Below are positions 2,532 to 64,000 of a stretch of DNA of 64,000 nucleotides, piece by piece; position 1 is the first letter of the stretch, and each line of letters starts with the position of its first letter. The position numbers and the translations under genes are program-made. The DNA comes from Ranitomeya imitator. Taxonomy: Eukaryota. The stretch spans positions 16,244,001-16,308,000 of the forward strand of contig NC_091288.1 in assembly GCF_032444005.1 (NCBI RefSeq), in the 5' to 3' direction. The notes under the pieces were generated by a model, which ran no database searches, was not told the DNA's origin, and was given only the letters and a program-made list of their open reading frames with translations.

Positions 2532-3193
2532 ATGATCTGGCTTCTGAAGCTCTTGTTGGTACTGGAAACAATTCAAGTGAGGCTAAAGAAGATAAAGAGA
2601 AGGACCAGGAACAATCCATGTTTTCTGAGTAAAGATGAGATAAAAGAAGCCGAAGAAGCTAAAGAACGAACCCAACGACTTTTAACTGATGCGCTGAAGA
2701 AAAAGGAAAGTCTCCTGGTGGAAGATCCCAAGGTGTTTGGAGACCTAAATTTAGAGAAGCTTTATCCATTCCTCACCACAGATGTGGTGGAGGAGCTGAT
2801 CCGAGAACTAGAGAAGGTGACGTTTGCAAAAAATAAAGATCCTAAGCAAGATATTGGAACTGTTGCGTATGTATACCGCGGCTCTGAAGATAGAACTATC
2901 TACCTATGTGAACTATTTTGGATAATGGATCCAAAATTTAAATTCCAACAAGACACAATCATCCACGAGGTTTGCCACATTCTTGGTTATGGTCATACAG
3001 TCCAGGAGAACAGTGACCGAGTGCAGAAGTCTCCACAGTCTATGTTGTGCCCTCAGACCACTTACTCAGTGGCTTCAGCCCTGACATCATCCATGGATCA
3101 TCCTGGAACCTTCACAGACGGCTCCTACTCCTGCTGTGGTGAGACCTCCCGGGACACCGTGTGCGAGAAATCCTGGATCTGTAACCACATCAG
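2532..3193 (+). CDS. Zinc metalloprotease-like protein, copy 1, protease exon (M35-like N-terminal region, HEVCHILGYGH motif)
   Basis: 221-aa ORF with AYVY...IYLCELFW...QDTIIHEVCHILGYGH (motif at 2964-2996) and GSYSCCGETS...VCE. Upstream acceptor TTTTTCTGCACAG at 2474; donor ATCAG|GTAGGT at 3193/3194. Confidence 0.8.
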
Positions 3194-3858
3194 GTAGGTG
3201 TCACATATTTATGTATTTCTAGACAGTATAATGTCTAGTGATTTACTGATCTACTGCAAATTGCCATAAAGAGGAAAGAGCGGAGCAAGTTGGTTACATC
3301 TACAGGGTGATGAGTAGTTTTTCCCTCATATGGGGCAAAGTTTAATTTTACTACCCTCGATCTATATCTAAATACCCTGACCAGGATGCTGACACCCAGA
3401 ATCCGGAGTATATTGGGTATATAAACAATGGGAGGGAATGTATAGAATGTATAATACATGTGGCATAACTATTGGCTGTCTGTGCACCAGAAAATTAAGT
3501 CTAAAGCAGCTCTTGATTTTACATACTTTCTCATGTAAGTGATTCCTCTGTGCTTGGAGAGACCAAGCTCAATTTTGTTAAATCCTCAATTTTATTAATT
3601 TTTTTACAAAAGTAACACAAAGGGCAAAAAGTTGAAATTTTTGACCATACCTGTCTTGTGGCAAATTTTGGAACCGGTTTATGATAAATAATAAATATCC
3701 CTCTTTGTGTTTCTACAAGTGAATCTGAGACTAAATAGTAGCTCCGTAGCTTATAAACGCGGCTGCTGAAATTTACTCACTCCCTAGATTCAGATACAAA
3801 AGTAAAAGGTCAGGAGAACAACTAGGTCTCAAGTAAGGGCAAATTATCAGGAGAGTAA

Positions 3859-4214
3859 GGCTAGGTTCACATTGCGTTAGGGCAATCCGTTTAGCGCAGA
3901 GCGCTAGCGGATTGCGCTAATGCAATGTCTCTAGAGGGATCGTGTTTGCCGATCCCGCTAGCGCAGATACCCAATCTGCGCTAGCAAGGAACGAACCTCG
4001 GACGCTGCAAGCAGCGTCCAAGGTCCGTCCGAAAATAACGGCACATAGATAGCGTATGCCGAAAATGGCATGCGCTAGCGATGCGCTAGAGATTAAAACC
4101 ACATTGCCATCAATGGGTGCGCTAACGGACCCGTTGCATGGCATTAATTGCGACAATTTCGCCGTGTAACGGAGTCTGCTAGCGTTAACCCATAAACGCA
4201 ATGTGAATCTAGCC
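3859..4214. mobile_element. PIF/Harbinger (Tourist-like) MITE
   Basis: TIRs GGCTAGGTTCACATTGCGTT / AACGCAATGTGAATCTAGCC, flanked on both sides by TAA (3856-3858, 4215-4217). Confidence 0.85.
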
Positions 4215-4289
4215 TAAGATCTGATTTTTAACCTTGCATCTAACTAATTTGATAATTTTATTTTTTTTATTTTTATTATTATGTATCAG

Positions 4290-5199
4290 GTTGGTGAAGT
4301 TGATGCACAAAGTAGAACGTCTGTGGAAACAAATATTGCTGGTGCCGAGATGTCCTGCTGGTGACGAGACTGATACTACCAGTGATGATACAGATGCTCC
4401 GGTAGAAGAGATGGGGGCAGATACTTGTAGCGTAAAGACAGAATTTTCTTTTGAAGATCCGGATATATCTGATGATGAGATAGATGAGGAGCAGACAGAT
4501 ATTGTTATGCAGATGGTAAAGAGATGGACGACTCTGGTGAAAACTCAGTACAGTCTGTTGAAGACACAAACCAATTTGTTAGAGAAGCAGAAAGATCTGA
4601 TGAAACAAATCAATCTATTGAAGACGCAGAGAAATCTATTGAAGACGCAGAGAAATCTATTGAAGACGAAGAGAAATCTATTGAAGACGCAAAGAAATCT
4701 ATTGAAGACACAGAGAAATCTATTGACGCAGAGAAATCTATTGAAGACACAGAGAAATCTATTGAAGACACAGAGAAATCTATTGAAGACACAGAGAAAT
4801 CTATTGAAGACACAGAGAAATCTATTGAAGACACAGAGAAATCTATTGACGCAGAGAAATCTATTGAAGACACAGAGAAATCTATTGACGCAGAGAAATC
4901 TGTTGAAGACACAGAGAAATCTATTGAAGACGCAGAGAAATCTGTTAATGGCACAGGATAATGTTTTGAAGAAAAAGGACAATATGGAGAAGACACTGGT
5001 CGATATTTTTGAGACACAGTTCGATATGTTGGAGACACAGGTCAATGTGGCGAAAACAGAGGCGGATGTGGTGAACACCCTGAGCGATATACTGAAGACA
5101 CTGGCCGATGTGTTGGAGACACAGTGTGTGTGGAAACGTAGGCTGTTATGGTTTAGGTACAGGATGAGGTTTTGGACCAAGTATGGGGCAGAGAATTGA
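4290..5199 (+). CDS. Copy 1 second exon: acidic linker plus heptad-repeat coiled-coil tail
   Basis: T-rich acceptor ...ATGTATCAG|GTTGG at 4289/4290, phase 2 and in frame with the copy 1 donor. Open to TGA at 5199. Could alternatively be a separate ORF from ATG 4303. Confidence 0.65.
4611..4945 (+). repeat. Coding 21-bp tandem repeat (LLKTQRN x16)
   Basis: Unit AATCTATTGAAGACACAGAGA. Three units are 18 bp (LLTQRN), so the frame is preserved. Confidence 0.95.
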
Positions 5200-8100
5200 A
5201 ATAATGGCCCCACATTCAGAAAAAAATACACTAGAATCTCAGTGACTTAAAAAAATTTACTTTTAAAGGGTTAAGTGTCCTGTTGTGCCATAATAAAGAG
5301 GTTAAAACAATATCATGATTTTACTACTACATGTTCTGTACACGACTGATGTTATAATCAGATCAGGGATACGACAATCGATGACCTTTATGACTATTTA
5401 CATATAGTAATTATTAATACAATCCACTTATCATTTGCAGCCTGGAAGCCAACAAGAACTTGATTTTGGTTGACAAAAAAGGCTGACACTTGTAGTTATT
5501 ATTTTTAGTTTATAAACCAAATAAATTAAAATTGTTCTTCTCAGTTTCTGTATTTTTCCTAATAACAATAAAAAAAATTATTATCCAACAAGAGGATAAA
5601 CCGCACTCCTGACTTTGGAAGAAAATATAGAATAGACTTTATTTAATTAATCAGTATCTCACAAAGCATTGTAGCATTGCGGGAATGTTTTCAGACTGAT
5701 GAAGGTCCTTCTTCAGGCTCTATGAGGAGGAATAAGGACAGCCTTGCCTCCCATTTATTTCCACACTACTTCTGGGTAAGAAGGATAGAATTGGGCTTAA
5801 ATATTTATACAATCAGATACAATTTTGAAAACTCTGGTCCAGACTGATTTTCTATGTGATACGTGAAGGATGTGAGTGATCAGCGATGTATCGGCCATTA
5901 CGTAATAAAGGAGAAATGTCAAAGGTCTAAAATATGACTATACAAGATGCCACTAAGTAGTGAAAAAAAAATACTTTATAAAAGAGGATAAACGAATTTG
6001 CAAGGAAATGGACATCCCAGATTCTCTCCTGGCTGATGTTAAATTCCTATATGGTTTGGCAGACTCCACTCCTGAACAATTGGGTAGGGACCGTTCATTG
6101 AGTTAAAAGAAAAAAGTTAAAAAAATGCCCCCAGCACAAAGTGATCAATCCACCATTGACATCTTTGTGGAGTTGGTAACCAGAGATCTGGAGAGATTGG
6201 AGACCGAAACCAAAAGTGGAAAGTACAATTTATCCAGATCTGAAATAGAAGTCTTAAAGATGTTGGAAATACGGTCATCATGAACCAGGGAGATTATGTA
6301 GCTATGTGTCAAAAAATCCTGAATGAACGTAGAGATTATGAGAAATTATCCTCCAATCCCACTGCTAAGTATGTTAAACAACTCAAAGGGATCCTAGACA
6401 GGGGTTTGGAAGACTCCCTAATTGATAAAAATGAGTATGATTTTCTCTTTCCACAGTACCCAGTAATGGCAACCTTTTATTGTCTTCCAAAGGTGCATAA
6501 AGGTCTGACACCACTAAAGGGGAGACCTATAGTATCAGGGATTAACAGCCTGTGTCATCATGTAGGAATGTATCTAGATGTAATTTTGAAACCCCATGTT
6601 GTCTCGCTCAACTCCTATACAAGAGATTCCAATGACCTCTTGAGGAAATTGGACGATTTAGTTCTGGAACCAGAAGCCCTTTTTGTGTAGTATTGATGTG
6701 GAGGCTCTCTACTCATCCATCAATCATGGGGATGGTCTGAGGGCAGTGGAGTATTTCATTAGGAGTATAGGTCAACAATATACAAGACACAACAAATGGG
6801 TATTAGATCTATTGGAGTTTTGTTTGACAAAAACATCTTTTTGTTTGATGGCACAGTCCACCACCAGCTCAGGGGCACAGCGATGGGCAATTCTTGTGCG
6901 CCTATGTACGCTAATTTTCTCCTGGGCTGGTGGGAGAAGACTATCGTTTTTGGGGAATCATTTATCGAAGAACAGACCAAAATTTTCTTTTGGTCGAGAT
7001 ACATCGATGATGTGCTATTAGTGTGGAATGGGGATGTCACAAGCTTTACCACCTTTGTGTTAAAATTAAATGACAACCCTTTGGGATTACGCTTCACTTG
7101 TGAACATCATGAGAACCAATTACCCTTCCTATATCTGTGCATACAAAAGATGCCGGATGGTCATATCAATACCAAAACATACAGAAAACCAACTTCCACA
7201 AATGCCCTCCTCCGGTGGGACAGCCACCACCCCGTGCCCCTGAAAAAAGGTATCCCTAAGGGACAATATTTGAGGGCACAGCGGAATTGTTCATCCATGC
7301 AGGATTATCGTGACCAAGCAGATGATTTGTGACTACAATTCCTAGATAGGGGTTACCCTGATGGCATTTTGAGGAAAGCATTTAAGGAAGTTGAAAAGGT
7401 GAGCAGAAACAATCTCCTGGTACCAACTCCCAAAAAAGATGACATACCAAAATGTAGGTATATTACAACTTTTAATAATGGTGCACAGCAGATCTGGGCT
7501 ATTTTACAAAAACATTGGTCCATCCTTCATATGGATGAGGACATTGGAGAAATAGTTGGAAAATGCCCTAGCATCACTTTTCAGAAAGGAAAATCTATAG
7601 ATGACAGATTGGTACACAGCCACTACACCGCACCAAGAAAGGAAACCTGGCTTTCCAATCAATCCAAAGGATGCTATAAATGCAGTGGCTGTGTGGCATG
7701 TCCTGTTCTAGCAATAGGATCAAACTTCAGGAGTGAAAGAACTGGAAAAGAATATCTGTTTTATCACTTTATAAATTGTGGAACGAAGGGAGTGATATAT
7801 AGAGCTGTGTGCACCTGCGGTCTTGAATATATAGGCAAAACTATAAGGGAATTCAGAAGACGAGTAGGAGAGCATCTGAGAGATATCACCCTAAAAAGAG
7901 ACACTCCATTAGCTAAACATATGAATGCCAAACATTATGGTAAGAGCTGTGATTTGAGGTTTATGGGAATCGATAAGGTCATTCCACCAAGGAGGGGTGG
8001 AAATTGGGACCAGATATTGTTACAACGTGAGACAAAATGGATTCATCGTCTGAAAACACAAACACCTGGAGACTTTAATGAGATTTTCACCTACAGCTGT

Positions 8101-9112
8101 TTTCTTTGACATCTTAGGGTAAACCATTATTTCATAAACCCTGCGCACCATTCTGCCCTTCCTTCCCCCTCTTTGTTTCTATTAAGGGTTATGTAGGGCA
8201 TATACAGGGCTAGCAATCGTGGAATGGGGGCGCCATCTCTCGTGTATCTATCCGTAGGGTGCCAACCTCCATTGATAGGTAGGGTACAGCCGGTAGGAGT
8301 TTTGGAGGGAAATGCTGATATCCTACACACTTTTCTTCTTCTCGTTGTCTTCCTTCCATTCACTTATAACGTTTGGCATTCATACAACTTTATACCATTT
8401 CTCCAAAAGCATAAAATTTTGATCCCAATTACCCTCATCGGTGCCCTAATTGTGGAGCGGAGTCTGCTGTGATCATCATTTTCATTTTTTTTCGAGAGTA
8501 CAATGCATTTTTTCTGAGAGTACAACTATTGCTTTAAGAGTATAATGATTAAAATTTAGGAATGTGATCTTTAATTTTTCCCCTTTTATTTACTTTACCA
8601 GCAAATGCCTTGACATTCTGGCCCTCCTTCCTTTATGGAGGTTTAGATAGGATCTTTTCTTGGAGAATTGAAACTACTGTTTGTAATAGAAAACACCCGT
8701 TTTTCTGGCGACTGGACCTTGAGGGGTTATTTTTATTCAAGTATGTCCCTGGCCCGGCACAGAGTTCTAATTACGCTCTAGTATGTCCATGCGCTGCATA
8801 GTATGCCTATGGGAAGAGAGGCTTGCGGCTCACTTATGCGTTCCAGAAGAGAGGCGCATGAGCTGGACACTATAGTTACAGGAAGGGACGCAAGCATTCC
8901 ATGAGAGAGGCACATAGGATATGATGTTGGCACGTCCTAGGACAAGTGCGCATAGGAAATTACGTCAGAACACTTGAAACACGAGGATCTGGTGGTGGTC
9001 TATTTAACCGGCGGCACTACAGTAGGTATGAGATACCACATTATTCCCCCATTTGCATCATGGGTGTCCACTTGGTATGACGGATGGAGACCCGACTTTT
9101 CCTTCAACAATA

Positions 9113-20184: not shown

Positions 20185-23100
20185 ATAGAGAGACTGAAAT
20201 TCTCGCCCGTTCTTCCTTGGCAAACAGCTCGAGCTCAGTGAGGTTGGATGGAGATCGTTTGTGAACAGCAGTTTTTAGCTCTTTCCACAGATTCTCGATT
20301 GGATTGAGGTCTGGTGTTATGGACCTGGTGGTTAGGACTGTTATGGACCTAGTGGTTAGGAGCACCCGGAACGACCTGGTAGTTAAAACAATACAGGACA
20401 AGCTCTGGGAAGTGGGAACGCTGCTGACCGCAACCCCTAAACCTATCACACACACTAGAAATAGCCGTGGATTGCTCCTAACACTCCCTATGCAACTCGT
20501 CACAGCCTCAGAGCTAGCTAGCCCTAAAGGTAGAAAATAAAGCCTACCTTGCCTCAGAGAAATTCCTCAAAGGAAAAGGCAGCCCCCCACATATATTGAC
20601 TGTGAGTTAAGATGAAAGTCACAAACACAGAGATGAAATAGATTTCAGCAAATAGAGGCCCGACTTACTAAACAGACAGAGGATAGGAAAGGTATCTTTG
20701 CGGTCAGCACAAAAAACTACAAAAAACCACGCAGAGTGTGCAAAAAGACCTCCGCACCGACTCACGGTGCGGAGGTGCCACTCTGCATCCCAGAGCTTCC
20801 AGCTAGCAAGACAAAATCATAATAGCAAGCTGGACAAGAAAAATAGTGAACAAATAATTAACTAGCAGGAACTTAGCTTCTGCTGGAGTAGACAGGTCAC
20901 CAGAAAGATCCAGGAGCGAACTAAACCAGTACTAGAACATTGACAGCTGGCATGGAGTAACGATCTAAGTGGAGTTAAATAGAGCAGCAGCTAAAGAACA
21001 ACTTAAGTCACCTGTGGAAGGAACCTCAGAAGCAGCAGCTCCACTCACAGCCACCAGAGGGATTCCATGAACAGAACTCGCCGAAGTACCATTCATGACC
21101 ACAGGAGGGAGTTCGATAACAGAATTCACAACAGTACCCCCCCCCCCTTGAGGAGGGGTCACCGAACCCTCACCGGAGCCCCCAGGCCGACCAGGATGAG
21201 CCAAATGAAAGGCACGAACTAGATCGGCAGCATGAACATCAGAGGCAAAAACCCAGGAATTATCTTCCTGACCATAACCCTTCCACTTGACTAGGTACTG
21301 GAGTTTCCGTCTCGAAATACGAGAATCCAAAATCTTCTCCACCACATATTCCAACTCCCCCTCGACCAACACCGGGGCAGGAGGATCAACGGAGGGAACC
21401 ATAGGCGCCACGTATCTCCGCAATAACGACCTATGGAACACATTATGGATGGCAAAAGAAGCTGGAAGGGCCAAACGAAATGACACAGGATTGAGAACTT
21501 CAGAAATCTTATACGGACCAATGAAACGAGGCTTAAACTTAGGAGAGGAAACCTTCATAGGAACATAACGAGACAACAACCAAACCAAATCCCCAACACG
21601 AAGCCGGGGATCAACACAGCGCCGGCGGTTAGAGAAACGTTGAGCCTTCTCCTGGGACAATGTCAAATTGTCCACCACCTGAGTCCAAATCTGTTGCAAC
21701 CTGTCCACCACAGTATCCACACCAGGACAGTCCGAAGGCTCCACCTGCCCTGAAGAGAAACGAGGATGGAAACCAGAATTACAAAAAAAAGGCGAAACCA
21801 AAGTAGCCGAGCTGGCCCGATTATTAAGGGCGAACTCAGACAAAGGCAAAAAGGACACCCAATCATCCTGATCAGCAGAAACAAAGCATCTCAGATATGT
21901 TTCCAAAGTCTGATTAGTTTGTTCGGTTTGGCCATTTGTCTGAGGATGGAAAGCCGAAGAAAAAGACAAATCAATACCCATCCTAGCACAAAAGGACCGC
22001 CAAAACCTCTAAACAAACTGGGAACCTCTGTCCGAGACGATGTTCTCCGGAATGCCATGCAAACGAACCACATGCTGGAAAAACAATGGCACCAAATCAG
22101 AGGAGGAAGGCAATTTAGACAAGGGTACCAAATGGACCATCTTAGAGAAGCGATCACAAACCACCCAAATGACCGACATCCTTTAAGAAACGGGAAGGTC
22201 AGAAATAAAATCCATAGAGATATGTGTCCAAGGCTTCTTCGGGACCGGCAAGGGCAAAAGCAACCCACTGGCACGAGAACAGCAGGGCTTAGCCCGAGCA
22301 CAAGTCCCACAGGACTGCACAAAAGAACGCACATCCCGTGACAAAGAAGGCCACCAAAAGGATCTAGCCACCAAATCTCTGGTACCAAAGATTCCATTGT
22401 TGCCCAAAATTTCGATTTTGGTTTCATCTGACCAGAGCACCTTCTTCCACATGTTTGGTGTCTCCCAGGTGGCTTGTTGCAAACTTTAAATTACACTTTT
22501 TATGGATATCTTTGAGAAATGGCTTTCTTCTTGCCACTCTTCGATAAAGGCCAGATTTGTGCAGTGTACGACTGATTGTTGTCCTATGGACATACTGTCC
22601 CACCTCAGCCGTAGATCTCTGCACTTCATCCAGAGTGATCATGGGCCTCTGGGCTGCATCTCTGATCAGTCTTCTCCTTGTTTGAGATGAAAGCTTAGAG
22701 GACGGCCGGGTCTTGGTAGATTTGCAGTGGTTTGATACTCCTTCCATTTCAATATGATCGCTTGCACAGTGCTCCTTGGGGTGTTTAAAGTTTTGGAAAT
22801 CATTTTGTATCCAAATCCAGCTTTAAACGTCTCCACAACAGTATCACAGACCTGCCTGTTGTGTTCCTTGGTCTTCATGATGCTCTCTGTGCTTCACACA
22901 GAACCCTGAGACTATCACAGAGCAGGTGCATTTATACGGAGACTTGATTACACACAGGTGGATTATATTTATCATCATTAGGCATTTAGGACAACATTGG
23001 ATCATTCAGAGATCCACAATGAACTTCTGCAGTGAGTTTGCTGCACTGAAAGTAAAGGGGCCGAATAATATTGCACGCCCCACGTTTCAGTTTTTGAATT

Positions 23101-26263: not shown

Positions 26264-27916
26264 CAGTTAGGGCCAGAAATATTTGGACAGTGACACAATT
26301 TTTGCGAGTTGGGCTCTGCATGCCACCACATTGGATTTGAAATGAAACCTCTACAACAGAATTCAAGTGCAGATTGTAACGTTTAATTTGAAGGGTTGAA
26401 CAAAAATATCTGATAGAAAATGTAGGAATTGCACACATTTCTTTACAAACACTCCACATTTTAGGAGGTCAAAAGTAATTGGACAAATAAACATAACCCA
26501 AACAAAATATTTTTATTTTCAATATTTTGTTGCAAATCCTTTGGAGGCAATCACTGCCTTAAGTCTGGAACCCATGGACATCACCAAACGCTGGGTTTCC
26601 TCCTTCTTAATGCTTTGCCAGGCCTTTACAGCCGCAGCCTTCAGGTCTTGCTTGTTTGTGGGTCTTTCCGTCTTAAGTCTGGATTTGAGCAAGTGAAATG
26701 CATGCTCAATTGGGTTTAGATCTGGAGATTGACTTGGCCATTGCAGAATGTTCCACTTTTTGGCACTCATGAACTCCTGGGTAGCTTTGGCTGTATGCTT
26801 GGGGTCATTGTCCATCTGTACTATGAAGCGCCGTCCAATCAACTTTGCAGCATTTGGCTGAATCTGGGCTGAAAGTATATCCCGGTACACTTCAGAATTC
26901 ATCCGGCTACTCTTGTCTGCTCTTATGTCATCAATAAACACAAGTGACCCAGTGCCATTGAAAGCCATGCATGCCCATGCCATCACGTTGCCTCCACCAT
27001 GTTTTACAGAGGATGTGGTGTGCCTTGGATCATGTGCCGTTCCCTTTCTTCTCCAAACTTTTTTCTTCCCATCATTCTGGTACAGGTTGATCTTTGTCTC
27101 ATCTGTCCATAGAATACTTTTCCAGAACTGAGCTGGCTTCTTGAGGTGTTTTTCTGCAAATTTAACTCTGGCCTGTCTATTTTTGGTATTGATGAATGGT
27201 TTGCATCTAGATGTGAACCCTTTGTATTTACTGTCATGGAGTCTTCTCTTTACTGTTGACTTAGAGACAGATACACCTACTTCACTGAGAGTGTTCTGGA
27301 CTTCAGTTGATGTTGTGAACGGGTTCTTCTTCACCAAATTAAGTATGCGGCGATCATCCACCACTGTTGTCATCCGTGGACGCCCAGGCCTTTTTGAGTT
27401 CCCAAGCTCACCAGTCAATTCCTTTTTTCTCAGAATGTACCCAACTGTTGATTTTGCTACTCCAAGCATGTCTGCTATCTCTCTGATGGATTTTTTCTTT
27501 TTTTTTCAGCCACAGGATGTTCTGCTTCACCTCAATTGAGAGTTCCTTTGACCACATGTTGTCAGCCCACAGCAACAGCTTCCAAATGCAAAACCACACA
27601 CCTGGAATCCACCCCTGACCTTTTAACTACTTCATTGATTACAGGTTAACGAGGGAGACCCCTTCAGAGTTAATTGCAGCCCTTAGAGTCCATTGTCCAA
27701 TTACTTTTGGTCCCTTGAAAAAGAGGACGCTATGCATTACAGAGCTATGATTCCTAAACCCTTTCTCCGATTTGGATGTGGAAACTATCATATTGCAGCT
27801 GGGAGTGTGCACTTTCAGCACATATTATATATATAATTGTATTTCTGAACATGTTTTTGTAAACAGCTAAAATAACAAAACTTGTGTCACTGTCCAAATA
27901 TTTCTGGCCCTAACTG
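26264..27916 (-). mobile_element. Near-complete Tc1 transposon (1653 bp)
   Basis: TIR CAGTTAGGGCCAGAAATATTTGGACAGTGACACA at both ends, TA flanks inside a (TA)n tract. Confidence 0.95.
26519..27557 (-). pseudogene. Tc1 DD34E transposase with one N-terminal frameshift
   Basis: 316-aa ORF 26519-27469 with WTDETK, MDNDPKH and SPDLNPIE. The N-terminal MWSKELSIEVKQ lies in another frame across the poly-T run near 27490-27508. Confidence 0.85.
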
Positions 27917-28671
27917 TATATATATTTGCTATCACTGTAATTTTAGTGACCCACAGAAAACAAATGTCGCTTATACCTCATGGTAATAGGGATAATATTT
28001 CAATTAAAAAAAAAAATTGTAGAATTGCTGTTTTTCCATTCCTTTCTTTGCAAAATGTGAATTCAAGTTTTTCAATACTTTATATAAAACCAGAATATGG
28101 TAATTAAAAAACAACAAGCCCTAAACAAAATTAAAATATGGCTCTTGGTGATGAAGCTCCGGATTTCAATACAATCATCTGATGGTGGATCTTACTTCAT
28201 CTTGGAGAATTATTGCGCCGTCTTGAAGAATTATTAAGTTAATGATGCTAAATTGTAAACAAATCAAACAATATTAAAAGCTAAAAAAAAGTGTAAAAAT
28301 AAACAATAGTCTTTGTTCTCACTGTTCTTGTGATGTTTTTCCTTTTGTGACTTGCTCATATTTTGTGTAAGTAATGGCAGTGGAGCCTTCTGTGTGAAAT
28401 AAAAACTACATTTCACCATTAAGCAACAGCATTGAAAAATTAAAATGTTTGCTCTGAAAACAAAGTGACAAAACGGCAATGACAATGGAAAGGTTTTCCC
28501 GTGTGGCTATTCTGCTAAATAGGAAAAATCTGTTTACTGCTTGCTTTTATATGATGTAATAAAAGGTGTCTATAGTGAAAATGAAAGCAATGCAGCAAAC
28601 TTTTTCTGCACAGAATATCAAGAAGACGTCAGAATAACTTGGACAAACAGGTAACAATTCCTGTAGACTGG

Positions 28672-29336
28672 ATGATGTCCTGGCTTCTGAAGCTCTTGTT
28701 GGTACTGGAAATGATTAAAGTGAGGCCAAAGAAGATACAGAGAAGGATCATGAACAATCCATGTTTTCTGAGTAAAGATGAGATAAATGAAGCCGAAGAA
28801 GCTAAAGAACGAACCCAACGACTTTTATCTGATGCTCTGAAGAAAAAGGAAAGTCTCCTGGTGGAAGATCTGAAGGTGTTCGAAGACATGACCTTAAAGA
28901 CGCTTTATCCATTCATCACCACGGATCTAGTGAACGAGCTGATGCGAGAACTAGAGAAGGTGACGTTTGCAAAAAATAAATATCCTGTAAAAGATATTGG
29001 AGTTAACGCGTATGTATACCCCGGGTCTGACGATAGAACCATCCATCTATGTGCACCATTTTTTAAAATGGATCCAAAATCTAAATCCCAAGAAAGAACC
29101 ATTATCCACGAGGTTTCCCACTTTCTTGGTTATGGTCACACAGTCCAGAAGAACAGTGACAGAGTGAAGATGTCACCACAGTCCATGTTGTGTCCTCAGA
29201 CGACTTACTCTGTGGCTTCAGCCCTGACATTGGACATGGACCATCGAGGACCCTTCACAGATGGCTCCTACTCCTGCTGTGGTGAGACCTCCCGGGACAC
29301 CGTGTGTGAGAAATCCTGGGCTTGTAAGTACATAAG
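28672..29336 (+). CDS. Zinc metalloprotease-like protein, copy 2, protease exon (HEVSHFLGYGH)
   Basis: Intact ORF about 79% identical to copy 1 (hand count); motif at 29107-29139. Acceptor at 28613; phase-2 donor ATAAG|GTTGGT at 29336/29337. The unspliced frame stops at 29349. Confidence 0.8.
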
Positions 29337-30609
29337 GTTGGTGACATAAATTTCCATACAGTATATAGTTGGCTCCTATATATGTGCCCTATTTCATTCT
29401 TTTCCTTAGCTATGGTGGGCATACTTTCAAAGTTATGTTTGGCAGAAGTGTGACATAAGAAGGAGCGACGGTTCTGTGTTGTTTAGTTACTGTTTTTTTC
29501 CCCACTACTTTATTGTTAATCTTTGCACCTACAATTTTGAGACCGGAGAAACGTCCAGCGCTTGGTTTTATTTTCTGTATATGTTCAAAAGGAAATGAAA
29601 TAAAATAATAATACAATAATAAAATAAATATATAATATACAAGTATAAAATATAAAATATATCATCTAAATAAAGTAAACAAAATAATATTTAGAAAAAA
29701 AAAAAGTATGGTAATTTTATAGTTGCCAACTGCCGTGGAAATTACTGTGACTCTAGGACTAAATGGAGTTTATGCAAACCCCACCCAAAACAGGGAGCTA
29801 CAGGTGCTTTCCAAGATCGTTGGGGCTTTCCTGGGAGCTGGGAGATTGGGGTGGGACTTAAATGTCTGCAGAAATGTTGGCAATTATGTAACTTACTAAT
29901 TTATGGTTAATAATTGTGATCAGTAATACAAAAAACAAAAAAACACAATACTATCACCATAAGTGCCAGTATTCACAGGAGATCTGTACTTAGTATGCAG
30001 TGTCTGTGTAGAGGTAATACAGAGATCACTGGTGACATTATACACAGGACCTCTATATAGTATACAGTGTATAGTGTCAGTGTATAGGTAACACTGACTC
30101 ACCAGTGACGTCTCTAGGTGAAGTCCTTCATCTTTCATCCAGCACAGACCGCCATAATTTCTTCCAGCCAGGACTCGTTTCTGCAGGAAATAACACAGTT
30201 ATTTCAAGCTCCGCTTGCAGAACACATTACTTAATTTTTCACAACTTCTACATTACACCACATGAAGAAAAAAAGGCGATATAGTGTCACTCTGCACAGT
30301 AACAGGACCGCCCCCCCATTTAAAACAGTATACTCAAAAAATAAAATAAATACATCGCTGCAGTAATAATATCCCTTAATTAGCCCCTATGGTAATATTC
30401 CCCATCCTGGCCCCGTGTGTCTCATTCCTGGCTCCAGCCATATGTTCTCGCATCCTGCCCTCATGAGTATCCATTCTACACCATATGATCTCCCCATCCT
30501 GCCCCATCTGTCTCCATCGTATCCATCCTGCCCCATGATCCAATCCTGCCCCATGTCTTTCATTCTGCCCCGTGTCTCCAATCATGCCCCGTGTCTACAT
30601 TCTGCCCAT

Positions 30610-31545
30610 GCCTCCAGTCCTGCCCCCAGTGTGTCCAGCAATCTGCCCCAGTGTGTCCAGCATATTACCCCTAGTGTGTCCAGCATATTACCCCCAGTGT
30701 GTCCAGCATATTACCCCCAGTGTGTCCAGCAACCTGCCCCAGTATGTCCAGCATATTGCCCCAGTGTCCAGCAATCTGCCCCAGTGTCCAGCATTGCCCC
30801 AGCGTGTCCAGCAATCTGCCCCAGTGTGTCCAGCATATTACCCCCAGTGTGTCCAGCATATTACCCCCAGTGTGTCCAGCAATCTGCCCCAGTATGTCCA
30901 GCTTATTGCCCCAGTGTCCAGCAATCTGCCCCAGTGTGTCTAGCATTGCCCCCAGACAGTGTCTCCAGCAATCTGCCCCAGTGTCTGACTCCAGCATATT
31001 GCCCCCATTGTGTCCAGCAATCTGCCCCAGTGTGTCCAGCAATCTGCCCCAGTGTGTCCAGCATATTACCCCCAGTGTGTCCAGCAATCGGCCCCAGTAT
31101 GTCCAGCATATTGCCCCAGTGTGTCCAGCATTGCCCCCAGACAGTGTGTCCAGCAATCTGCCCCAGTGTGTCCAGCATATTACCACCAGTGTGTCCAGTA
31201 ATCTGCCCCAGTGTCTCCAGCATTGCTCCAGTGTCTCCAGCATTGCCCCAGTGTCTCCAGCAATCATCTGCCCTAGTGTGTCCTCCAGCATTGCCCCAGT
31301 GTGTCCAGCAGTCTTCCCCAGTGTCTCCAGCATTACCCCAGTGTGTCCAGCATTGCCCCAGTGTCTCCAGCAATCTGCCCCAGTGTGTCCTCCAGCATTG
31401 CCCCCAGTGTGTCCATCAATCTGCCCCAGTGTCTCCAGCATTGCCCCAGTGTCTCCATCATTGCCCAAGTGTGTCCAGCAATCTGCCCCAGTGTGTCCAG
31501 CAATCTGCCCCAGTGTGTCCAGCAATCTGCCCCAGTGTGTCCACC
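30610..31545. repeat. C-rich minisatellite (~20-24 bp units, CCCCAGTGTGTCCAGCAATCTG) inside a repeat element (~29900-31886)
   Basis: Direct tandem repetition with unit variants. Confidence 0.9.
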
Positions 31546-31890
31546 ATTAGCTTACCAAAAAAAAAAAAAAGAGTCTCCTCACCTGACCTGGCACTCCAGC
31601 GCTGAGCTCCCTCCAGCAGTGCACACTCGCCGGCGACTGACAATGACGTCAGACGCCGGCGACGTGTGCGCTGCGGCCGACATCAGCCGCCAGCCTCCAA
31701 TTGGCTGGCAGCTGTTGTTGTTAACTATTGACGTGCGGGCGCGCGGCCGCACGTCAATAGGAAAGCGCCGCAGCGCCGGAAGGGGCCCGGTGAGCAGACG
31801 AGACGGGGCCTGATGCGGGCACCCTCTCTCTGCCCACCGGGTCCGGGAACACATAAATGTCAGCGGGCAGTGGGCATTCACCACCACACT

Positions 31891-32479: not shown

Positions 32480-32837
32480 AGAGATGTCCCGGAAGAACCC
32501 GTGGAGACATATGGGAAGATACAGAAACCTCTGAAGAAAAGACTCTACCAGAAAGCAGACAAGTACTGATACTCGGCCGGCGCACAGATTCATGTCTCAG
32601 GTGAAAAGACACATAGATCTGTTAAAGACGCAAAACAATTTGTTGAAGAAGCAGAAAAATCTGATTAAGAAACAAAACAATCTGATGAAGGGAAATGGTG
32701 CTGTTGTGAAGAAAAAGGCTGATATGGTGAAGCTACTGGCCAGTATGGTGGCGACAAAGGCTGATATGGTAAAAACACTGGCCAGTATGGTGAAGATAAA
32801 GGTGGATAGGGTGAAAAAAATGTTGATGTTTCCATGA
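32480..32837 (+). pseudogene. Copy 2 second exon: short heptad-repeat tail with a premature stop
   Basis: Acceptor TTTTTTTTTGGTTAATAG at 32479, phase 2 and in frame with MSQVKRHIDLLKTQNNLLKKQKNL..., which resembles the copy 1 tail. In-frame TGA at 32532-32534. Confidence 0.6.
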
Positions 32838-38771: not shown

Positions 38772-39622
38772 GTGATTCTGGACACAGGTGTGGACATGGA
38801 TATTCAGGGTCTGTGCTCTTCAATGGATAATCTCGTTATAAATGTACAAAAGATTCAAGATGCTATTGATCGGAAATCTATGTTAGAACCAAGAATTCCT
38901 ATTCCTGATTTGTTTTTTGGAGATAGAACTAAGTTTCTAAGTTTCAAAAATAATTGTAAGCTATTTCTGGCCTTGAAACCTCATTCTTCTGGTAATCCTA
39001 TTCAACAGGTTTTGATTATTATTTCTTTTTTGCGCGGCGACCCTCAAGACTGGGCATTTTCTCTTGCGCCAGGAGACCCTGCATTGAGTAGTGTCGATGC
39101 GTTTTTCCTGGCACTCGGATTACTTTACGATGAGCCTAATTCAGTGGATCAGGCTGAGAAAAATTTGCTGGCTTTGTGCCAGGGTCAGGATGATATAGAA
39201 GTATATTGTCAGAAATTTAGGAAATGGTCAGTACTCACTCAGTGGAATGAATCTGCGCTGGCAGCTTTGTTCAGAAAGGGTCTCTCTGAGGCTCTTAAGG
39301 ATGTCATGGTGGGATTTCCTATGCCTGCTGGTTTGAATGAGTCTTTGTCTTTGGCCATTCAAATCGGTCGACGCTTGCGCGAGCGTAATCTGTGCACCAT
39401 TTGGCGGTATTGCCTGAGGTTAAACCTGAGCCTATGCAGTGCGATAGGACTATGACCAGAGTTGAACGGCAGGAATACAGACGTCTGAATGGGCTGTGTT
39501 TCTACTGTGGTGATTCCACTCATGCTATTTCTGATTGTCCTAAGCGCACTAAGCGGTCCGCTAGGTCTGCCGTCATTGGTACTGTACAGTCCAAATTCCT
39601 TCTGTCCATTACCCTGATATGA
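38772..39622 (+). pseudogene. Gypsy gag with a frameshift near 39390 and a CCHC zinc knuckle
   Basis: Retrotransposon gag-type ORF 38772-39455. CFYCGDSTHAISDC is in the next frame, which ends in TGA at 39620-39622 in frame with pol. Confidence 0.85.
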
Positions 39623-39625
39623 TCT

Positions 39626-42600
39626 TTGTCGTCGTTTTCTGTCATGGCGTTTGTGGATTCAGGCGCTGCCCTGAATCTGATGGATTTGGATTATGCTAAA
39701 CGTTGTGGGTTTTTCTTGGAGCCTTTGCGGTGTCCTATTCCATTGAGAGGAATTGATGCTACACCTTTGGCCAAGAATAAACCTCAGTACTGGGCCCAGC
39801 TGACCATGTGCATGGCTCCTGCACATCAGGAAGTTATTCACTTTCTGGTGCTACATAATCTGCATGATGTGGTCGTGTTGGGGTTGCCATGGCTACAAAC
39901 CCATAATCCAGTATTGGATTGGAATTCCATGTCGGTATCCAGCTGGGGTTGTCAGGGGGTACATGGTGATGTTCCATTTTTGTCGATTTCGTCATCCACC
40001 CCTTCTGAGGTCCCAGAGTTCTTGTCTGATTATCAGGATGTATTTGAAGAGCCCAAGTCCGATGCCCTACCTCCGCATAGGGATTGTGATTGTGCTATCA
40101 ATTTGATTCCTGGTAGTAAATTCCCTAAAGGTCGATTATTTAATTTATCCGTGCCCGAACACGCCGCTATGCGCAGTTATGTGAAGGAATCCCTGGAGAA
40201 GGGACATATTCGCCCATCATCATCACCACTGGGAGCAGGGTTCTTCTTTGTAGCCAAGAAGGATGGTTCGCTGAGACCGTGTATTGATTACCGCCTTCTT
40301 AATAAGATCACTGTTAAATTTCAGTATCCCTTGCCATTGTTATCTGACTTGTTTGCTCGGATTAAGGGGGCTAGTTGGTTCACTAAGATAGATCTTCGTG
40401 GTGCGTATAATCTGGTGAGAATCAGGCAAGGAGATGAATGGAAAACTGCATTCAATACGCCCGAGGGTCATTTTGAGTATCTAGTAATGCCATTCGGACT
40501 TGCCAATGCTCCATCTGTGTTTCAGTCTTTTATGCATGACATCTTCCGTGAGTATCTGGATAAATTCCTGATTGTTTACTTGGATGACATTTTGATCTTC
40601 TCTGATGATTGGGAGTCTCATGTGAAGCAGGTCAGAATGGTTTTTCAGGTCCTGCGTGCTAATTTTTTGTTTGTGAAGGGATCAAAGTGTCTCTTCGGTG
40701 TGCAGAAAGTTTCATTTTTGGGGTTCATCTTTACCCCTTCTACTATCGAGATGGATCCAGTTAAGGTCCAAGCCATCCAGGATTGGATTCAGCCGACATC
40801 TCTGAAAAGTCTGCAAAAGTTCCTGGGCTTTGCTAATTTTTATCGTCGCTTCATCTGTAATTTTTCTAGCATTGCCAAACCATTGACCGATTTGACCAAG
40901 AAGGGTGCTGATTTGGTTAATTGGTCTTCTGCTGCTGTGGAAGCTTTTCAGGAGTTGAAGCGTCGTTTTTGTTCTGCCCCTGTGTTGTGTCAGCCAGATG
41001 CTTCTCTTCCGTTCCAGGTCGAGGTTGATGCTTCTGAGATTGGAGCAGGGGCGGTTTTGTCACAGAGAGGTTCTGATTGCTCAGTGATGAAACCATGTGC
41101 TTTCTTTTCCAGGAAGTTTTCGCCCGCTGAGCGTAATTATGATGTGGGCAACCGAGAGTTGCTGGCCATGAAGTGGGCATTCGAGGAATGGCGCCATTGG
41201 CTTGAAGGAGCCAAGCATCGCGTGGTGGTATTGACTGATCATAAGAACTTGACTTATCTCGAGTCTGCCAAGCGCTTGAATCCTAGACAGGCCCGTTGGT
41301 CGTTATTTTTTGCCCGCTTCGACTTTGTGATTTCGTACCTTCCGGGCTCTAAAAATGTGAAGGCGGATGCTCTGTCTAGGAGTTTTGTGCCCGACTCTCC
41401 GGGTTTATCTGAGCCAGCGGGTATCCTCAAGGAAGGAGTCATTGTGTCTGCCATCTCCCCTGATTTGCGGCGGGTGCTGCAAAAATTTCAGGCGAATAAA
41501 CCTGATCGTTGTCCAGCGGAGAAACTGTTCGTCCCTGATAGGTGGACTAATAAACTTATCTCTGAACTTCATTGTTCGGTGTTGGCTGGTCATCCTGGAA
41601 TCTTTGGTACCAGAGAGTTAGTGGCTAGATCCTTCTGGTGGCCATCTCTGTCACGGGATGTACGTACTTTTGTGCAGTCCTGTGGGATTTGTGCTAGGGC
41701 TAAGCCCTGCTGTTCTCGTGCCAGTGGGTTGCTTTTGCCCTTGCCGGTCCCAAAGAGGCCTTGGACACATATTTCGATGGATTTCATTTCTGACCTTCCC
41801 GTTTCTCAAAAGATGTCAGTCATTTGGGTGGTCTGTGATCGCTTTTCTAAAATGGTCCATCTGGTGCCCTTGGCTAAATTGCCTTCCTCCTCTGATTTGG
41901 TACCTTTGTTCTTTCAGCATGTGGTTCGGTTGCATGGCATTCCTGAGAATATTGTTTCTGACAGAGGTTCCCAGTTTGTTTCAAGGTTTTGGCGAGCCTT
42001 TTGTGGTAGGATGGGCATTGACCTATCCTTTTCCTCGGCTTTCCATCCTCAGACTAATGGCCAGACCGAACGAACCAATCAGACCTTGGAAACATATCTG
42101 AGATGTTTTGTTTCTGCTGACCAGGATGATTGGGTGTCCTTTTTGCCGTTGGCTGAGTTCGCCCTTAATAATCGGGCCAGCTCGGCTACCTTGGTTTCTC
42201 CATTTTTTTGCAATTCTGGGTTCCATCCTCGTTTCTCTTCAGGACAGGTTGAGTCTTCGGACTGTCCTGGTGTGGATTCTGTGGTGGACAGGTTGCAGCA
42301 GATCTGGACTCAGGTAGTGGACAATTTGACCTTGTCCCAGGAAAAGGCTCAACTTTTCGCTAATCGCAGACGCCGTGTGGGTCCCCGACTTCGTGTTGGG
42401 GATCTGGTTTGGTTATCTTCTCGTCATATTCCTATGAAGGTTTCCTCTCCTAAATTTAAACATCGTTTTATTGGTCCGTATAGGATTTCTGAGGTTCTCA
42501 ATCCTGTGTCTTTTCGTTTGACCCTCCCAGACTCCTTTTCCATACATAATGTATTCCATAGGTCGTTGTTGCGGAGATACGTGGCACCTATGGTTCCATC

Positions 42601-42976
42601 TGTTGAGCCTCCTGCCCCGGTTTTGGTGGAGGGGGAATTGGAGTATATTGTGGAGAAGATTTTGGATTCTCGTGTTTCTAGACGGAAACTCCAGTATCTG
42701 GTTAAATGGAAGGGTTATGCTCAGGAAGATAATTCCTGGGTTTTTGCCTCTGATGTTCATGCTCCCGATCTTGTTCGTGCCTTTCATGCGGCTCATCCTG
42801 GTCGGCCTGGGGGCTCTGGTGAGGGTTCGGTGACCCCTCCTCAAGGGGGGGGTACTGTTGTGAATTCTGTGGCTGAATTCACTTCTGTGGTCACAAGTGG
42901 TACTGCAGCTTTTGAGCATCCTTCCTCAGGTGTTCTGGTGAGCTCGTTAACTGCTTCGTTACTTAACTCCACCTGA
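39626..42976 (+). CDS. Gypsy Pol: protease, RT, RNase H, integrase, chromodomain
   Basis: 1116-aa open frame with FVDSGA, YLDD, EVDASE...YDVGNRELLA, H-x-H...C-x2-C, DDE core, GPY and a chromodomain. Confidence 0.95.
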   Translation: MSSFSVMAFVDSGAALNLMDLDYAKRCGFFLEPLRCPIPLRGIDATPLAKNKPQYWAQLTMCMAPAHQEVIHFLVLHNLHDVVVLGLPWLQTHNPVLDWNSMSVSSWGCQGVHGDVPFLSISSSTPSEVPEFLSDYQDVFEEPKSDALPPHRDCDCAINLIPGSKFPKGRLFNLSVPEHAAMRSYVKESLEKGHIRPSSSPLGAGFFFVAKKDGSLRPCIDYRLLNKITVKFQYPLPLLSDLFARIKGASWFTKIDLRGAYNLVRIRQGDEWKTAFNTPEGHFEYLVMPFGLANAPSVFQSFMHDIFREYLDKFLIVYLDDILIFSDDWESHVKQVRMVFQVLRANFLFVKGSKCLFGVQKVSFLGFIFTPSTIEMDPVKVQAIQDWIQPTSLKSLQKFLGFANFYRRFICNFSSIAKPLTDLTKKGADLVNWSSAAVEAFQELKRRFCSAPVLCQPDASLPFQVEVDASEIGAGAVLSQRGSDCSVMKPCAFFSRKFSPAERNYDVGNRELLAMKWAFEEWRHWLEGAKHRVVVLTDHKNLTYLESAKRLNPRQARWSLFFARFDFVISYLPGSKNVKADALSRSFVPDSPGLSEPAGILKEGVIVSAISPDLRRVLQKFQANKPDRCPAEKLFVPDRWTNKLISELHCSVLAGHPGIFGTRELVARSFWWPSLSRDVRTFVQSCGICARAKPCCSRASGLLLPLPVPKRPWTHISMDFISDLPVSQKMSVIWVVCDRFSKMVHLVPLAKLPSSSDLVPLFFQHVVRLHGIPENIVSDRGSQFVSRFWRAFCGRMGIDLSFSSAFHPQTNGQTERTNQTLETYLRCFVSADQDDWVSFLPLAEFALNNRASSATLVSPFFCNSGFHPRFSSGQVESSDCPGVDSVVDRLQQIWTQVVDNLTLSQEKAQLFANRRRRVGPRLRVGDLVWLSSRHIPMKVSSPKFKHRFIGPYRISEVLNPVSFRLTLPDSFSIHNVFHRSLLRRYVAPMVPSVEPPAPVLVEGELEYIVEKILDSRVSRRKLQYLVKWKGYAQEDNSWVFASDVHAPDLVRAFHAAHPGRPGGSGEGSVTPPQGGGTVVNSVAEFTSVVTSGTAAFEHPSSGVLVSSLTASLLNST

Positions 42977-45547: not shown

Positions 45548-46110
45548 ATGTGTGACTACTTTGAGCTGGGGTCGATGGCGGAGGATGAGGACCGGACGGC
45601 GGTGGAGGCGCTCATCATTACTCTGAATATTCTGCATGACGCACTCAACAAGAAGGGGTGGCTGCTGGCAGAGCCAGGCAGAGACTATGGGCAGCGGGCA
45701 GAGAAGGCTCCTCTGATCTGCCCGCAGCTCGTAGAAGACCTTATTCACACTCTGCAGCAGATCGAGCTGCTCAAGCACCATACAACCAAGTCTGACATTG
45801 GCGCCGTCTACCCAATACCAGGTGCACCCGTCGTTGGCCTGTGCCAAGAGTTTTGGCTTCGACATGAAGATCTGAGACCCTGCTCCCGCCCGGGGTCATT
45901 AATCACAGCAGCCGCCTGTATTCTAGGGTACGATGATGAGATCTGGATAATGGCCAGGATGGAAGAAGACCAGAGACCGGTCCTGAGGGGGCGTCTCATC
46001 TGCGATGCCTTCGAATTCTGGATGAGGCACAAAGGGAATTACGTGAACGGTTCTTATACCTGTTGTGGGGAGACGTCCGTATACTCCGTCTGTGAGGACT
46101 CGGATATGAG
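45548..46110 (+). CDS. Metalloprotease-like family copy 3, protease-domain exon, HExxH lost
   Basis: Aligns with copy 1: LHDALNKKGWLLAE vs LTDALKKKESLLVE; GLCQEFW; GSLITAAACILGY; GSYTCCGETS...VCE. Phase-2 donor ATGAG|GTAAAA at 46110/46111. Confidence 0.7.
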
Positions 46111-46393
46111 GTAAAACGGGGGGAGGAACACAGGGGGCGTAGGGAGGCCTGAAGCCCCTCCGGCACATAACCACAGTGGTACATGGTGGGGGGAGGTACA
46201 CAGGGAAGCCTGAAGCCCCTCCGCCACATAACCACAGTGGTACATGTTGGGGGGAGGAACACGGGGGGTGCAGGGAGGTCTAAAGCCCCTCCGCCACATA
46301 ACCACAGTGGTACAAAAAAAATATATAGCACGTCACTCTGTAACTGGGAGGTGCTCGGAGAGGGATACCACACCCTTAATAAGTACAATTAAA

Positions 46394-47081: not shown

Positions 47082-47138
47082 CAATCCTAGTCTGATGAAG
47101 GTCTAAGTTTCAGACCGAAACGTTATATATTGGGATTG
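47082..47138 (+). ncRNA. Minimal type I hammerhead ribozyme motif
   Basis: CTGATGA-A-GGTCT(AAGTTTC)AGACC-GAAA-CGTT, with distal stem I CAATCC/GGATTG. Confidence 0.7.
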
Positions 47139-53163: not shown

Positions 53164-53745
53164 ATGGATGAAGAGCAGAGGACGGTGGCAGAAACTTCTA
53201 GAAAGGCAACTCTGAATGTCCTGACCGACGTCCACAGAAAGGGTCTCGTTGTGGATAATTCTCACCTACTGCAACCCACGGTATCGTTCCCTCTAATCTC
53301 GAGGACCCTTCTAGGAGACCTGGTAGAGAAACTGAGGACGGTGACGTTCAAGTGTGACAAAAAGCCAAGAAACGAAATTCTCTTCGCCTACCCTGCACCC
53401 CAGGACATCGTGTATCTGTGCCCCCTCTTCTGGAAACAGAAGCCTCGGTTGGACCACGGATCTCAAATTGGAACATTAATTCTCTGCGTGGCACAAATGT
53501 TGGGCTACAGACACATCCTCGATGGAACAAGTGATGCTGAGGAGCCTATGGGGGTCCGGAAAGGGACCTTACTGAGGGCCGATGACATTTGTGCTGTATT
53601 CGAAACTTGGATGAACCACCGGAAACCGTACGTGGAGGGTTCCTACTCCTGCTGCGGGGAGAACGTCCAGGACTCGGTGTGCACAGAGTCCTGCATGGGA
53701 TTACAGCTAAGGGAAAGTCTGCAGGAGGTCGACGAGAACGGCTAA
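53164..53745 (+). CDS. Metalloprotease-like family copy 4, HExxH lost, no 3' intron
   Basis: Acceptor TTCTTCCCCTTTAG at 53144 and ATG at 53164. Has YLCPLFW, SQIGTLILCVAQMLGYRH and GSYSCCGENVQDSVC; the frame is open to TAA at 53745. Confidence 0.72.
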   Translation: MDEEQRTVAETSRKATLNVLTDVHRKGLVVDNSHLLQPTVSFPLISRTLLGDLVEKLRTVTFKCDKKPRNEILFAYPAPQDIVYLCPLFWKQKPRLDHGSQIGTLILCVAQMLGYRHILDGTSDAEEPMGVRKGTLLRADDICAVFETWMNHRKPYVEGSYSCCGENVQDSVCTESCMGLQLRESLQEVDENG

Positions 53746-63414: not shown

Positions 63415-64000
63415 TCAGGTGCTATTTCCCTGTTCCTGCTCGAATAACAACATGGCCAGCTGGGACCGAGAGCCCAGTCCTTCCAGATTACTTTGCACGC
63501 ACCGATGGTAGATTTCCTCGCTGAGCCGCGGGTTACAAGCCCGCGTGCGGTAGGGCTGGAGGAGTGCCGGCTCCACAGCCCGGAAAACATGGAGCCCAGA
63601 GTAGCGAATAAACATCTCGTAGATGTCTAGCATCTCCAAGATCTCCTCGTTCTCCTGGGCATCGGCAGCCATTTTTGTCCTGGCCGCCATGTAGTCAGCG
63701 TTGTAGAAACAAGCTTCGTCGAAAACATCTCTGTCAAAGCGTCCAGCGTCCCGGACGAGTTCCAGAATCCCCGATGGAGACTGCTGCCCGTGCTCTGACA
63801 CTTCAGGGTTATAACCTTGGAAGTGAATGGGGAAGAAGACCTGCCAGTTGTTGATGGTGTTCATCCGGCAACGGTTGAGAAACTCTATGCCAACGCGGCT
63901 GCCGACGCCTGCGAGGAAGAAGAGAGTGTCCACCGGGTGTTTCTTGGAGATGATGTCCATGAGCCGAATCTGAGAAGGAGCGTCGGTCTTCACACTGATC
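63415..64000 (-). CDS. chpf: Chondroitin polymerizing factor (chondroitin sulfate synthase 2), 3' part of the last coding exon
   Basis: Recognisable C-terminus ...RLMDIISKKHPVDTLF...FLNRCRMN...HVFRAVEP...LEGLGSRSQLAMLLFEQEQGNST. The GNST ending matches CHPF as I recall it (CHPF2 ends ANST). The exon continues beyond the window. Confidence 0.93.
   Translation of the reverse strand, partial: ISVKTDAPSQIRLMDIISKKHPVDTLFFLAGVGSRVGIEFLNRCRMNTINNWQVFFPIHFQGYNPEVSEHGQQSPSGILELVRDAGRFDRDVFDEACFYNADYMAARTKMAADAQENEEILEMLDIYEMFIRYSGLHVFRAVEPALLQPYRTRACNPRLSEEIYHRCVQSNLEGLGSRSQLAMLLFEQEQGNST

Follow-up and report, generated by a model that had tools for sequence, protein, structure and literature searches.

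Do two neighbouring open reading frames (ORFs) in the genome of the dendrobatid frog Ranitomeya imitator, the first with a zinc-metalloprotease motif and the second with heptad repeats, belong to one gene, and what protein would such a gene encode? Both ORFs lie on the forward strand of contig NC_091288.1 (assembly GCF_032444005.1), within a stretch of 64,000 nucleotides (contig positions 16,244,001 to 16,308,000) that we call the window and whose own numbering is used below. The two ORFs are one genuine, transcribed, two-exon protein-coding gene, called copy 1 in the following, which the ORF track divides in two. Structure prediction and comparison with relatives suggest that its product combines an aspzincin (M35) metalloprotease domain with a Btk-type zinc knuckle, an acidic linker and a long helical tail (Table 1).

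The evidence for one gene begins with the splice sites. The copy 1 donor reads CACATCAG/GTAGGT with 3193 as the final exon base, exon 1 ending in frame with ...AAC CAC ATC AG in phase 2, and the acceptor is a T-rich tract followed by TGTATCAG/GTTGGTGAAG, exon 2 beginning at 4290 with G TTG GTG AAG. Splicing joins 662 and 910 nucleotides into 1572 nucleotides, that is 523 codons and a TGA with zero internal stops, and the peptide over the junction is ...SWICNHIR/LVKLMHKVERL. A preliminary description of the locus had proposed exactly these phases, lengths and junction residues, and all of them are borne out by the sequence. An annotated protein of the same species, XP_069591640.1 (435 residues, gene ranges of about 2.2 kb; P0002 below), aligns with the spliced product from end to end and is identical to it at the junction; the chief difference between the two is the presence of about 88 additional residues of LLKTQRN units in copy 1.

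Transcription was followed in Logan contigs of four public RNA runs, with labels including X1, X2, X3 and X6. RNA contigs lie over 2585-3196 and 4290-5480, the interval 3197-3831 is empty, and RNA depth in the intron is zero except in an interspersed repeat. With 4249-4289 masked as repetitive when the whole gene was aligned, the junction was read from contigs aligned to exon 1 alone. One X2 contig runs through 3193 and then continues for 255 more letters starting AAGTTGATGCACAAAGTAGAACGTCTGTGG, 30 of which are identical to 4297-4326, the first seven bases of exon 2 (GTTGGTG) having been aligned onto 3194-3200 (GTAGGTG). In an X2 contig the match begins exactly at 4290, and X1 and X6 contigs have the same 3193/4290 junction with one or two differences, which may be alleles or paralogs. 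RNA across this junction, named in the preliminary description as the check on its gene model, thus joins the exons directly. With the open frame of 523 codons and the identical junction residues of the annotated P0002, this establishes the two ORFs as one spliced gene. An X3 contig omits 61 nucleotides within exon 2 (4999-5059, GT..AG), which would shift the frame near the C-terminus. Alternative splicing at a low level, a transcript from a paralog, or misassembly of this repeat-like stretch could each account for the skip.

Could exon 2 instead be a second, independent gene, or non-coding satellite DNA with a chance open frame next to a protease gene? The 21-nucleotide repeat is open in several frames and on both strands, so openness alone is no proof of coding. 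However, the RNA contig that joins the exons refutes this view, only the phase 2 splice frame stays open through the non-repeat flanks, and the frame set by the splice is conserved in relatives of four genera. We give separate genes or a satellite practically no credence.

The repeat in the intron, a miniature inverted-repeat transposable element (MITE)-like sequence, is itself strongly represented in the RNA: over 3832-4215 the depth exceeds that of the exons by a factor of hundreds to thousands. Loose contig ends flank the element on either side, and we therefore attribute the signal to many copies elsewhere in the genome, many of which would be transcribed or read through.

We place the start of the protein at ATG 2532, because it is colinear with the annotated N-termini of two further R. 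imitator relatives, P0074 and P0083, and because the next in-frame ATG does not come before residue 132. A donor-like GGACAG/GTAACA at about 2506, which would make ATG 2532 intronic, was provisionally rejected, since the annotated N-termini of P0074 and P0083 follow the genomic sequence without a break from the corresponding ATG onward.

What fold does the first exon encode? An AlphaFold2 (AF2) model of exon 1, built on a 50-sequence alignment, has a predicted local distance difference test score (pLDDT) of 90.2 and a predicted template modelling score of 0.82. The best Foldseek matches of this model are 1ge6, 1g12 and 2x3b, with E < 1e-3 only for the Grifola peptidyl-Lys metalloendopeptidase structures and with AsaP1 and deuterolysin ranking next. 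VIA-align gives Z scores of 10.0-11.2 to 2x3c, 1ge6 and 1eb6 (model residues 29-191, 128-136 residues aligned, root-mean-square deviation ~3 Å), followed by Pra1 (Z 7.2) and minigluzincins (Z 5.6); matrix metalloproteinases and serralysins (1ayk, 3tt4, 1k7g) reach Z 3.1-3.6 only. A language-model search likewise indicates M35, and the cut-off of the Pfam family Aspzincin_M35 is passed by P0002 (33.8 bits), by turtle, alligator and ostrich relatives (33.6-46.7, the ostrich highest at 46.7) and by an axolotl relative (58.6). Residues 29-191 are predicted on these grounds to adopt the aspzincin (M35) zinc-metalloprotease fold.

Within this domain, HEVCH occupies residues 145-149 and falls in model helix 138-151. 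Relatives from salamanders and sauropsids, including axolotl, lizard, turtle and bird, carry HExxHFLG-x-x-D-x-x-Y, which is the aspzincin signature. Anurans have HExxH-x-LGY-x-H, with His at the last position instead of Asp, and the comparison suggests that the metzincin-like motif of the frogs arose through an Asp-to-His change inside the aspzincin lineage. In the proposed mechanism H145, H149 and H155 would bind a catalytic zinc ion, a second zinc ion being structural, and the domain would be an active endopeptidase acting through H145, E146, H149 and H155.

The structural zinc would sit in the region that follows. Pfam BTK (PF00779) scores 24.9 bits on copy 1 against a cut-off of 24, a cut-off that relatives pass as well. 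The pattern H-P-G-x-F-x-D-G-x-Y-x-C-C-x8-C fits the His and three Cys of H-x10-CC-x8/9-C, and in the 50-sequence alignment H190, C201 and C202 never vary, with C211 kept in at least 90% of the sequences. Residues 190-211 thus appear to form a Btk-type His-Cys3 zinc knuckle, the most conserved part of the family. A Foldseek comparison of the knuckle with the pleckstrin homology-Tec homology (PH-TH) region of BTK was not significant (E 1.4).

Exon 2 adds a module of a different kind. Tandem Repeats Finder (TRF) reports a period of 21 nucleotides over 4612-4972 (17.6 copies, 87% matches), and the encoded LLKTQRN array consists of 14 seven-residue and 3 six-residue units. In the full-length model of P0002 the exon junction falls within a helix (residues 216-238); next come a disordered acidic region (241-287) and a single helix of 146 residues (289-434, pLDDT 85-90); the P0002 stretch that matches the acidic linker has pLDDT < 50. 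By analogy with this model, the copy 1 tail is predicted to be a disordered acidic linker followed by a helix of about 200 residues with a 21-nucleotide, seven-residue periodicity. The HExxH protease-type domain, the acidic linker and the long heptad-periodic helical tail that the preliminary description had named are each found in the product. A Pfam search of exon 2 and the tail returned no match at E <= 1, ApoL (PF05461) included.

How widespread is such a protein? An exhaustive HMMER search over 1.84 billion cluster representatives found 61 related representatives. Relatives come from frogs, salamanders, turtles, lizards, crocodilians and a ratite, with one weak teleost match and a few short metagenome contigs; no mammals were among the relatives whose taxa were looked up. 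The family thus appears almost confined to non-mammalian tetrapods. The same two-part build is annotated in Ranitomeya (R. variabilis included), Phyllobates terribilis, Anomaloglossus, Leptodactylus and Engystomops, under the names "uncharacterized", "Lysine-specific metallo-endopeptidase domain-containing" and once, in Leptodactylus, "CCDC70", a label that appears to reflect repeat similarity only. Among the matches there was no identical 523-residue entry, the exact spliced product itself not having been used as query. In turtle, alligator and ostrich members an ApoL domain follows the zinc knuckle (E 5e-29 to 3e-17), and sauropsid members carry ApoL at the place of the frogs' heptad tail. 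The architecture, not recognised in the preliminary description, is therefore already annotated in Ranitomeya, Phyllobates, Anomaloglossus and Leptodactylus, although our literature searches on vertebrate aspzincins and aspzincin-ApoL fusions found no paper. Contamination or horizontal transfer as the origin of copy 1 was rejected in view of its intron, its paralogs and its relatives across amphibians and sauropsids.

The window contains at least four tandem paralogs, copy 1 included. Exon 1 of copies 1 and 2 is 88% identical, with a ratio of nonsynonymous to synonymous substitution rates (dN/dS) of 0.54 that rises above 1 over the first 30 codons; their upstream flanks (2100-2531 and 28240-28674, ~430 nucleotides) are 92.4% identical, above exon 1. 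These comparisons point to a tandem and fast-diverging cluster. The flanks share a TATA-like TATATGA(C/T)GTAATAAAAG some 100 nucleotides before the ATG, and the donor-like GGACAG/GTAACA stands shortly before it.

Copy 2 had been taken as independent support for the two-exon model, with the same donor position and an in-frame phase 2 acceptor before a homologous tail. X2 and X3 RNA contigs join ...GTACATAAG (...GCTTGTAAGTACATAAG) to AGAGATGTCCCGG, that is 29336/32480, and so confirm both the donor (29336/29337) and the phase 2 acceptor (32479/32480). The translated tail did not stand: the frame meets a TGA at 32532-32534, previously missed, after 18 codons of exon 2, so that copy 2 stops short of the homologous tail, and its spliced product of 239 residues is identical to R. 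imitator P0083, which fits this species, or one very close to it, as the source of the window. The intact Phyllobates protein P0077 (380 residues) reads through the tail region; relative to P0077, copy 2 has a deletion and a frame change. Copy 4 reads on for 10 codons past the donor position to a stop.

Where in the cell, and to what end, might the protein act? The highest 19-residue hydropathy in the product is 1.32, below transmembrane level, and the N-terminal hydrophobic run covers 11 residues, is broken by Lys and is followed by a basic cluster; hydropathy shows no transmembrane segment and, in agreement with the preliminary description, no signal peptide. Because of this, of the intracellular type of its Cys-rich zinc knuckle and of its ApoL-bearing relatives, the protein would be cytosolic or peripherally membrane-bound. 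The C-terminal module would concentrate or position the enzyme, either by self-association of its Leu-stripe helix or by binding to acidic surfaces. A secreted skin or venom-type protease, resembling the fungal and bacterial M35 enzymes, might also be imagined: secretion is the rule among M35 enzymes known so far, AsaP1 acts as a toxin (according to structure titles), and the source animal is a poison frog. However, copy 1 has neither signal peptide nor propeptide, cysteine knuckles of its Btk type are known in proteins of the cytosol, and relatives of copy 1 carry an ApoL fusion; we consider secretion very unlikely.

The tandem expansion, the dN/dS of 0.54 between copies, the repeated loss of catalytic residues and the variation in tail length would be in keeping with an evolutionary arms race, for instance in innate immunity. 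Going further, non-mammalian tetrapods might keep a family of intracellular effectors in cell-autonomous immunity, in which an aspzincin and a Btk-type knuckle are coupled to a targeting or oligomerising module (membrane-inserting ApoL in sauropsids, an expandable heptad helix in amphibians) and in which the anuran catalytic site has been rebuilt from His-His-Asp to a metzincin-like His-His-His inside the aspzincin fold; we offer this proposal tentatively and would not expect it to hold in full.

As a whole, a two-exon gene for an aspzincin with Btk-type knuckle and helical tail, including its role as an active cytosolic enzyme, is the probable explanation of the data. A number of observations weigh against it. 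At the 5' end, ATG 2532 lies outside the RNA contigs, whose coverage begins at 2585, and the start is placed by colinearity. The Pfam Aspzincin_M35 (PF14521) score of copy 1 is 29.4 bits against a cut-off of 30, and the proposed immune role is drawn solely from the domain partner of the relatives and from the evolutionary pattern. The remaining points concern catalysis and the tail.

With regard to catalysis, copy 1 reads GYGHTVQ in place of the aspzincin GTxDxxYG: a His takes the position of the third-ligand Asp and a Gln that of the Tyr after it, so that catalysis is not assured. In addition, HExxH varies within the family and the zinc knuckle is invariant. These features could mean that proteolysis has been lost and that the domain is a pseudo-protease scaffold, a zinc-knuckle and helical binding module whose tail functions through scaffolding or through membrane or partner binding. 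The family-invariant residues would then be, as observed, those of the His-Cys3 knuckle and not of HExxH, which is missing in two of the four window paralogs and in many relatives; the replacement of the aspzincin Asp and Tyr in frogs and a dN/dS of 0.54, indicating relaxed constraint, point the same way. However, the complete HExxHxxGxxH triad is present in copy 1 and in almost every anuran relative that has a tail, and its retention in both Hyloidea and Ranoidea suggests that metal binding is under selection. We regard a pure scaffold as unlikely and continue to favour an active enzyme.

With regard to the tail, the LLKTQRN unit has only an adjacent Leu-Leu, so that one canonical core position is hydrophobic, and carries a net charge of +2; the six-residue units break the heptad register three times, and the models are of the monomer only. 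Given this atypical, basic and interrupted heptad core, the "oligomerising" protease of the preliminary description is a possibility rather than a finding. Possibly the tail is instead one extended basic helix whose binding partner is acidic: nucleic acid, for example, or an anionic membrane, or the protein's own linker directly upstream. Residues 297-500 hold 43 Lys/Arg and 14 Asp/Glu, each heptad offers a single hydrophobic core position in a register shifted by the three short units, and the monomer model has one straight helix. However, coiled coils typically show such a strict seven-residue periodicity, here with a Leu-Leu stripe along ~120 residues; moreover, the non-repeat flank (residues 440-500) has more conventional hydrophobic a and d positions, and relatives have other tails that resemble coiled coils. 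The lone basic helix is a possibility to be taken seriously, although we incline against it; self-association of the tail is plausible.

In this family a vertebrate lineage possesses an intron-containing, expressed and tandemly expanded version of M35 that lacks a signal peptide and is joined to a knuckle of the Btk type as well as to one of two further modules, ApoL or a heptad helix. Should the enzyme be active, it would represent a new class of intracellular vertebrate metalloprotease and a natural switch of the third ligand, from Asp to His, within one fold. Through the ApoL fusion, innate immunity linked to ApoL could be approached experimentally in non-mammalian animals.

Other features of the window lie mostly between the paralogs. 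Long proline/cysteine-rich tandem repeats at 30415-31605 and 47100-48900 have more than one open frame on each strand and look like satellites rather than genes. Transposon-derived ORFs are found at 6280-8109, 20965-21981, 26519-27469, 38772-42976 and 50697-51431; from their translations only, we take the classes present to be reverse transcriptase with a GIY-YIG-like domain (Penelope-type), Ty3/gypsy pol with integrase and chromodomain, and Tc1/mariner transposase. An ORF on the reverse strand at 63415-63993, which runs off the window end, may serve as a synteny anchor; its translation presumably represents the C-terminal part of a glycosyltransferase of the chondroitin sulfate synthase/polymerising-factor type.

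Table 1. Features of the copy 1 gene and its paralogs, in window coordinates
Feature	Position	Strand	Basis or remark
Copy 1 exon 1, coding	2532..3193	+	220 codons + 2 bases, ATG 2532 to donor CAG/GTAGGT; ORF and RNA contigs
Predicted aspzincin (M35)-fold domain, residues 29-191	2616..3104	+	AF2 model, VIA-align, Pfam
Putative zinc-site motif HEVCHILGYGH (HExxHxxGxxH), residues 145-155	2964..2996	+	Read from translation
Putative Btk-type zinc motif H190, C201, C202, C211	3099..3164	+	Pfam BTK and conservation
Copy 1 intron	3194..4289	+	1096 nucleotides, GT..AG, phase 2
MITE-like interspersed element in intron	3858..4215	.	21-nucleotide terminal inverted repeats
Copy 1 exon 2, coding	4290..5199	+	TGA stop at 5197-5199 included
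Acidic linker, residues 246-296	4363..4515	+	20 Asp/Glu and 1 Lys/Arg in 51 residues
Predicted helical tail, residues 297-500	4516..5127	+	Core is the LLKTQRN array, 4612-4972
Basic/aromatic C-terminus (WKRRLLWFRYRMRFWTKY...)	5128..5196	+	Similar ends in P0002 and P0081
3' untranslated region, copy 1	5200..5480	+	RNA depth to ~5480; AATAAA at 5292 and 5520
Copy 2 exon 1	28672..29336	+	79% protein identity to copy 1; donor TACATAAG/GTTGGT
Copy 2, translated start of exon 2	32480..32534	+	Ends at TGA 32532-32534
Copy 2, untranslated relic of acidic and heptad tail	32535..32837	+	tblastn matches of copy 1 tail
Copy 3 paralog	45575..46112	+	Without HExxH; His-Cys3 knuckle kept; same phase 2 donor, ATGAG/GTAAAA
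Copy 4 paralog	53188..53712	+	Without HExxH; His-Cys3 knuckle kept; no GT at homologous donor

How does copy 1 compare with known systems? Its HEVCHILGYGH matches the linear HExxHxxGxxH consensus of the metzincins, but its fold does not match theirs (Z 3.1-3.6 versus 10-11 for aspzincins). M35 aspzincins are known from fungi and bacteria as secreted enzymes, some of them virulence factors. With the Grifola frondosa peptidyl-Lys metalloendopeptidase (GfMEP; 1ge6, 1g12), Aeromonas salmonicida AsaP1 (2x3a-c) and deuterolysin (1eb6), copy 1 shares the predicted fold and the placement of HExxH on the active-site helix, and salamander and sauropsid relatives have a signature of the G-T-x-D-x-x-Y-G type. 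In contrast to these enzymes, to which its sequence identity is just 15-19%, the frog protein is animal and apparently intracellular, without signal peptide or propeptide, has His and not Asp as presumed third ligand, with the Tyr replaced, and continues beyond the protease domain with a zinc knuckle of the Btk type and a long C-terminal module. The third ligand would lie 6 residues past the second His, compared with 9 in GfMEP.

The knuckle shares its pattern and four zinc ligands with the Btk motif of Tec-family kinases and some Ras GTPase-activating proteins, but in copy 1 it comes after a protease domain and no PH domain is present. Closer in architecture are the sauropsid aspzincin-ApoL proteins (Chrysemys XP_065417389.1, Alligator sinensis XP_025050415.1, Struthio XP_068804927.1), in which a homologous N-terminal protease and knuckle stand in the same order at 30-36% identity; these have Asp as third ligand and carry a C-terminal ApoL membrane-insertion domain, not an acidic linker and heptad helix. 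Closest are the annotated frog relatives (R. imitator XP_069591640.1/P0002, P0074 and P0083, Phyllobates terribilis P0077 and Anomaloglossus P0081), which have the same two parts and the same junction residues, with 86-94% identity in exon 1, and compared with which the LLKTQRN array of copy 1 is much longer.

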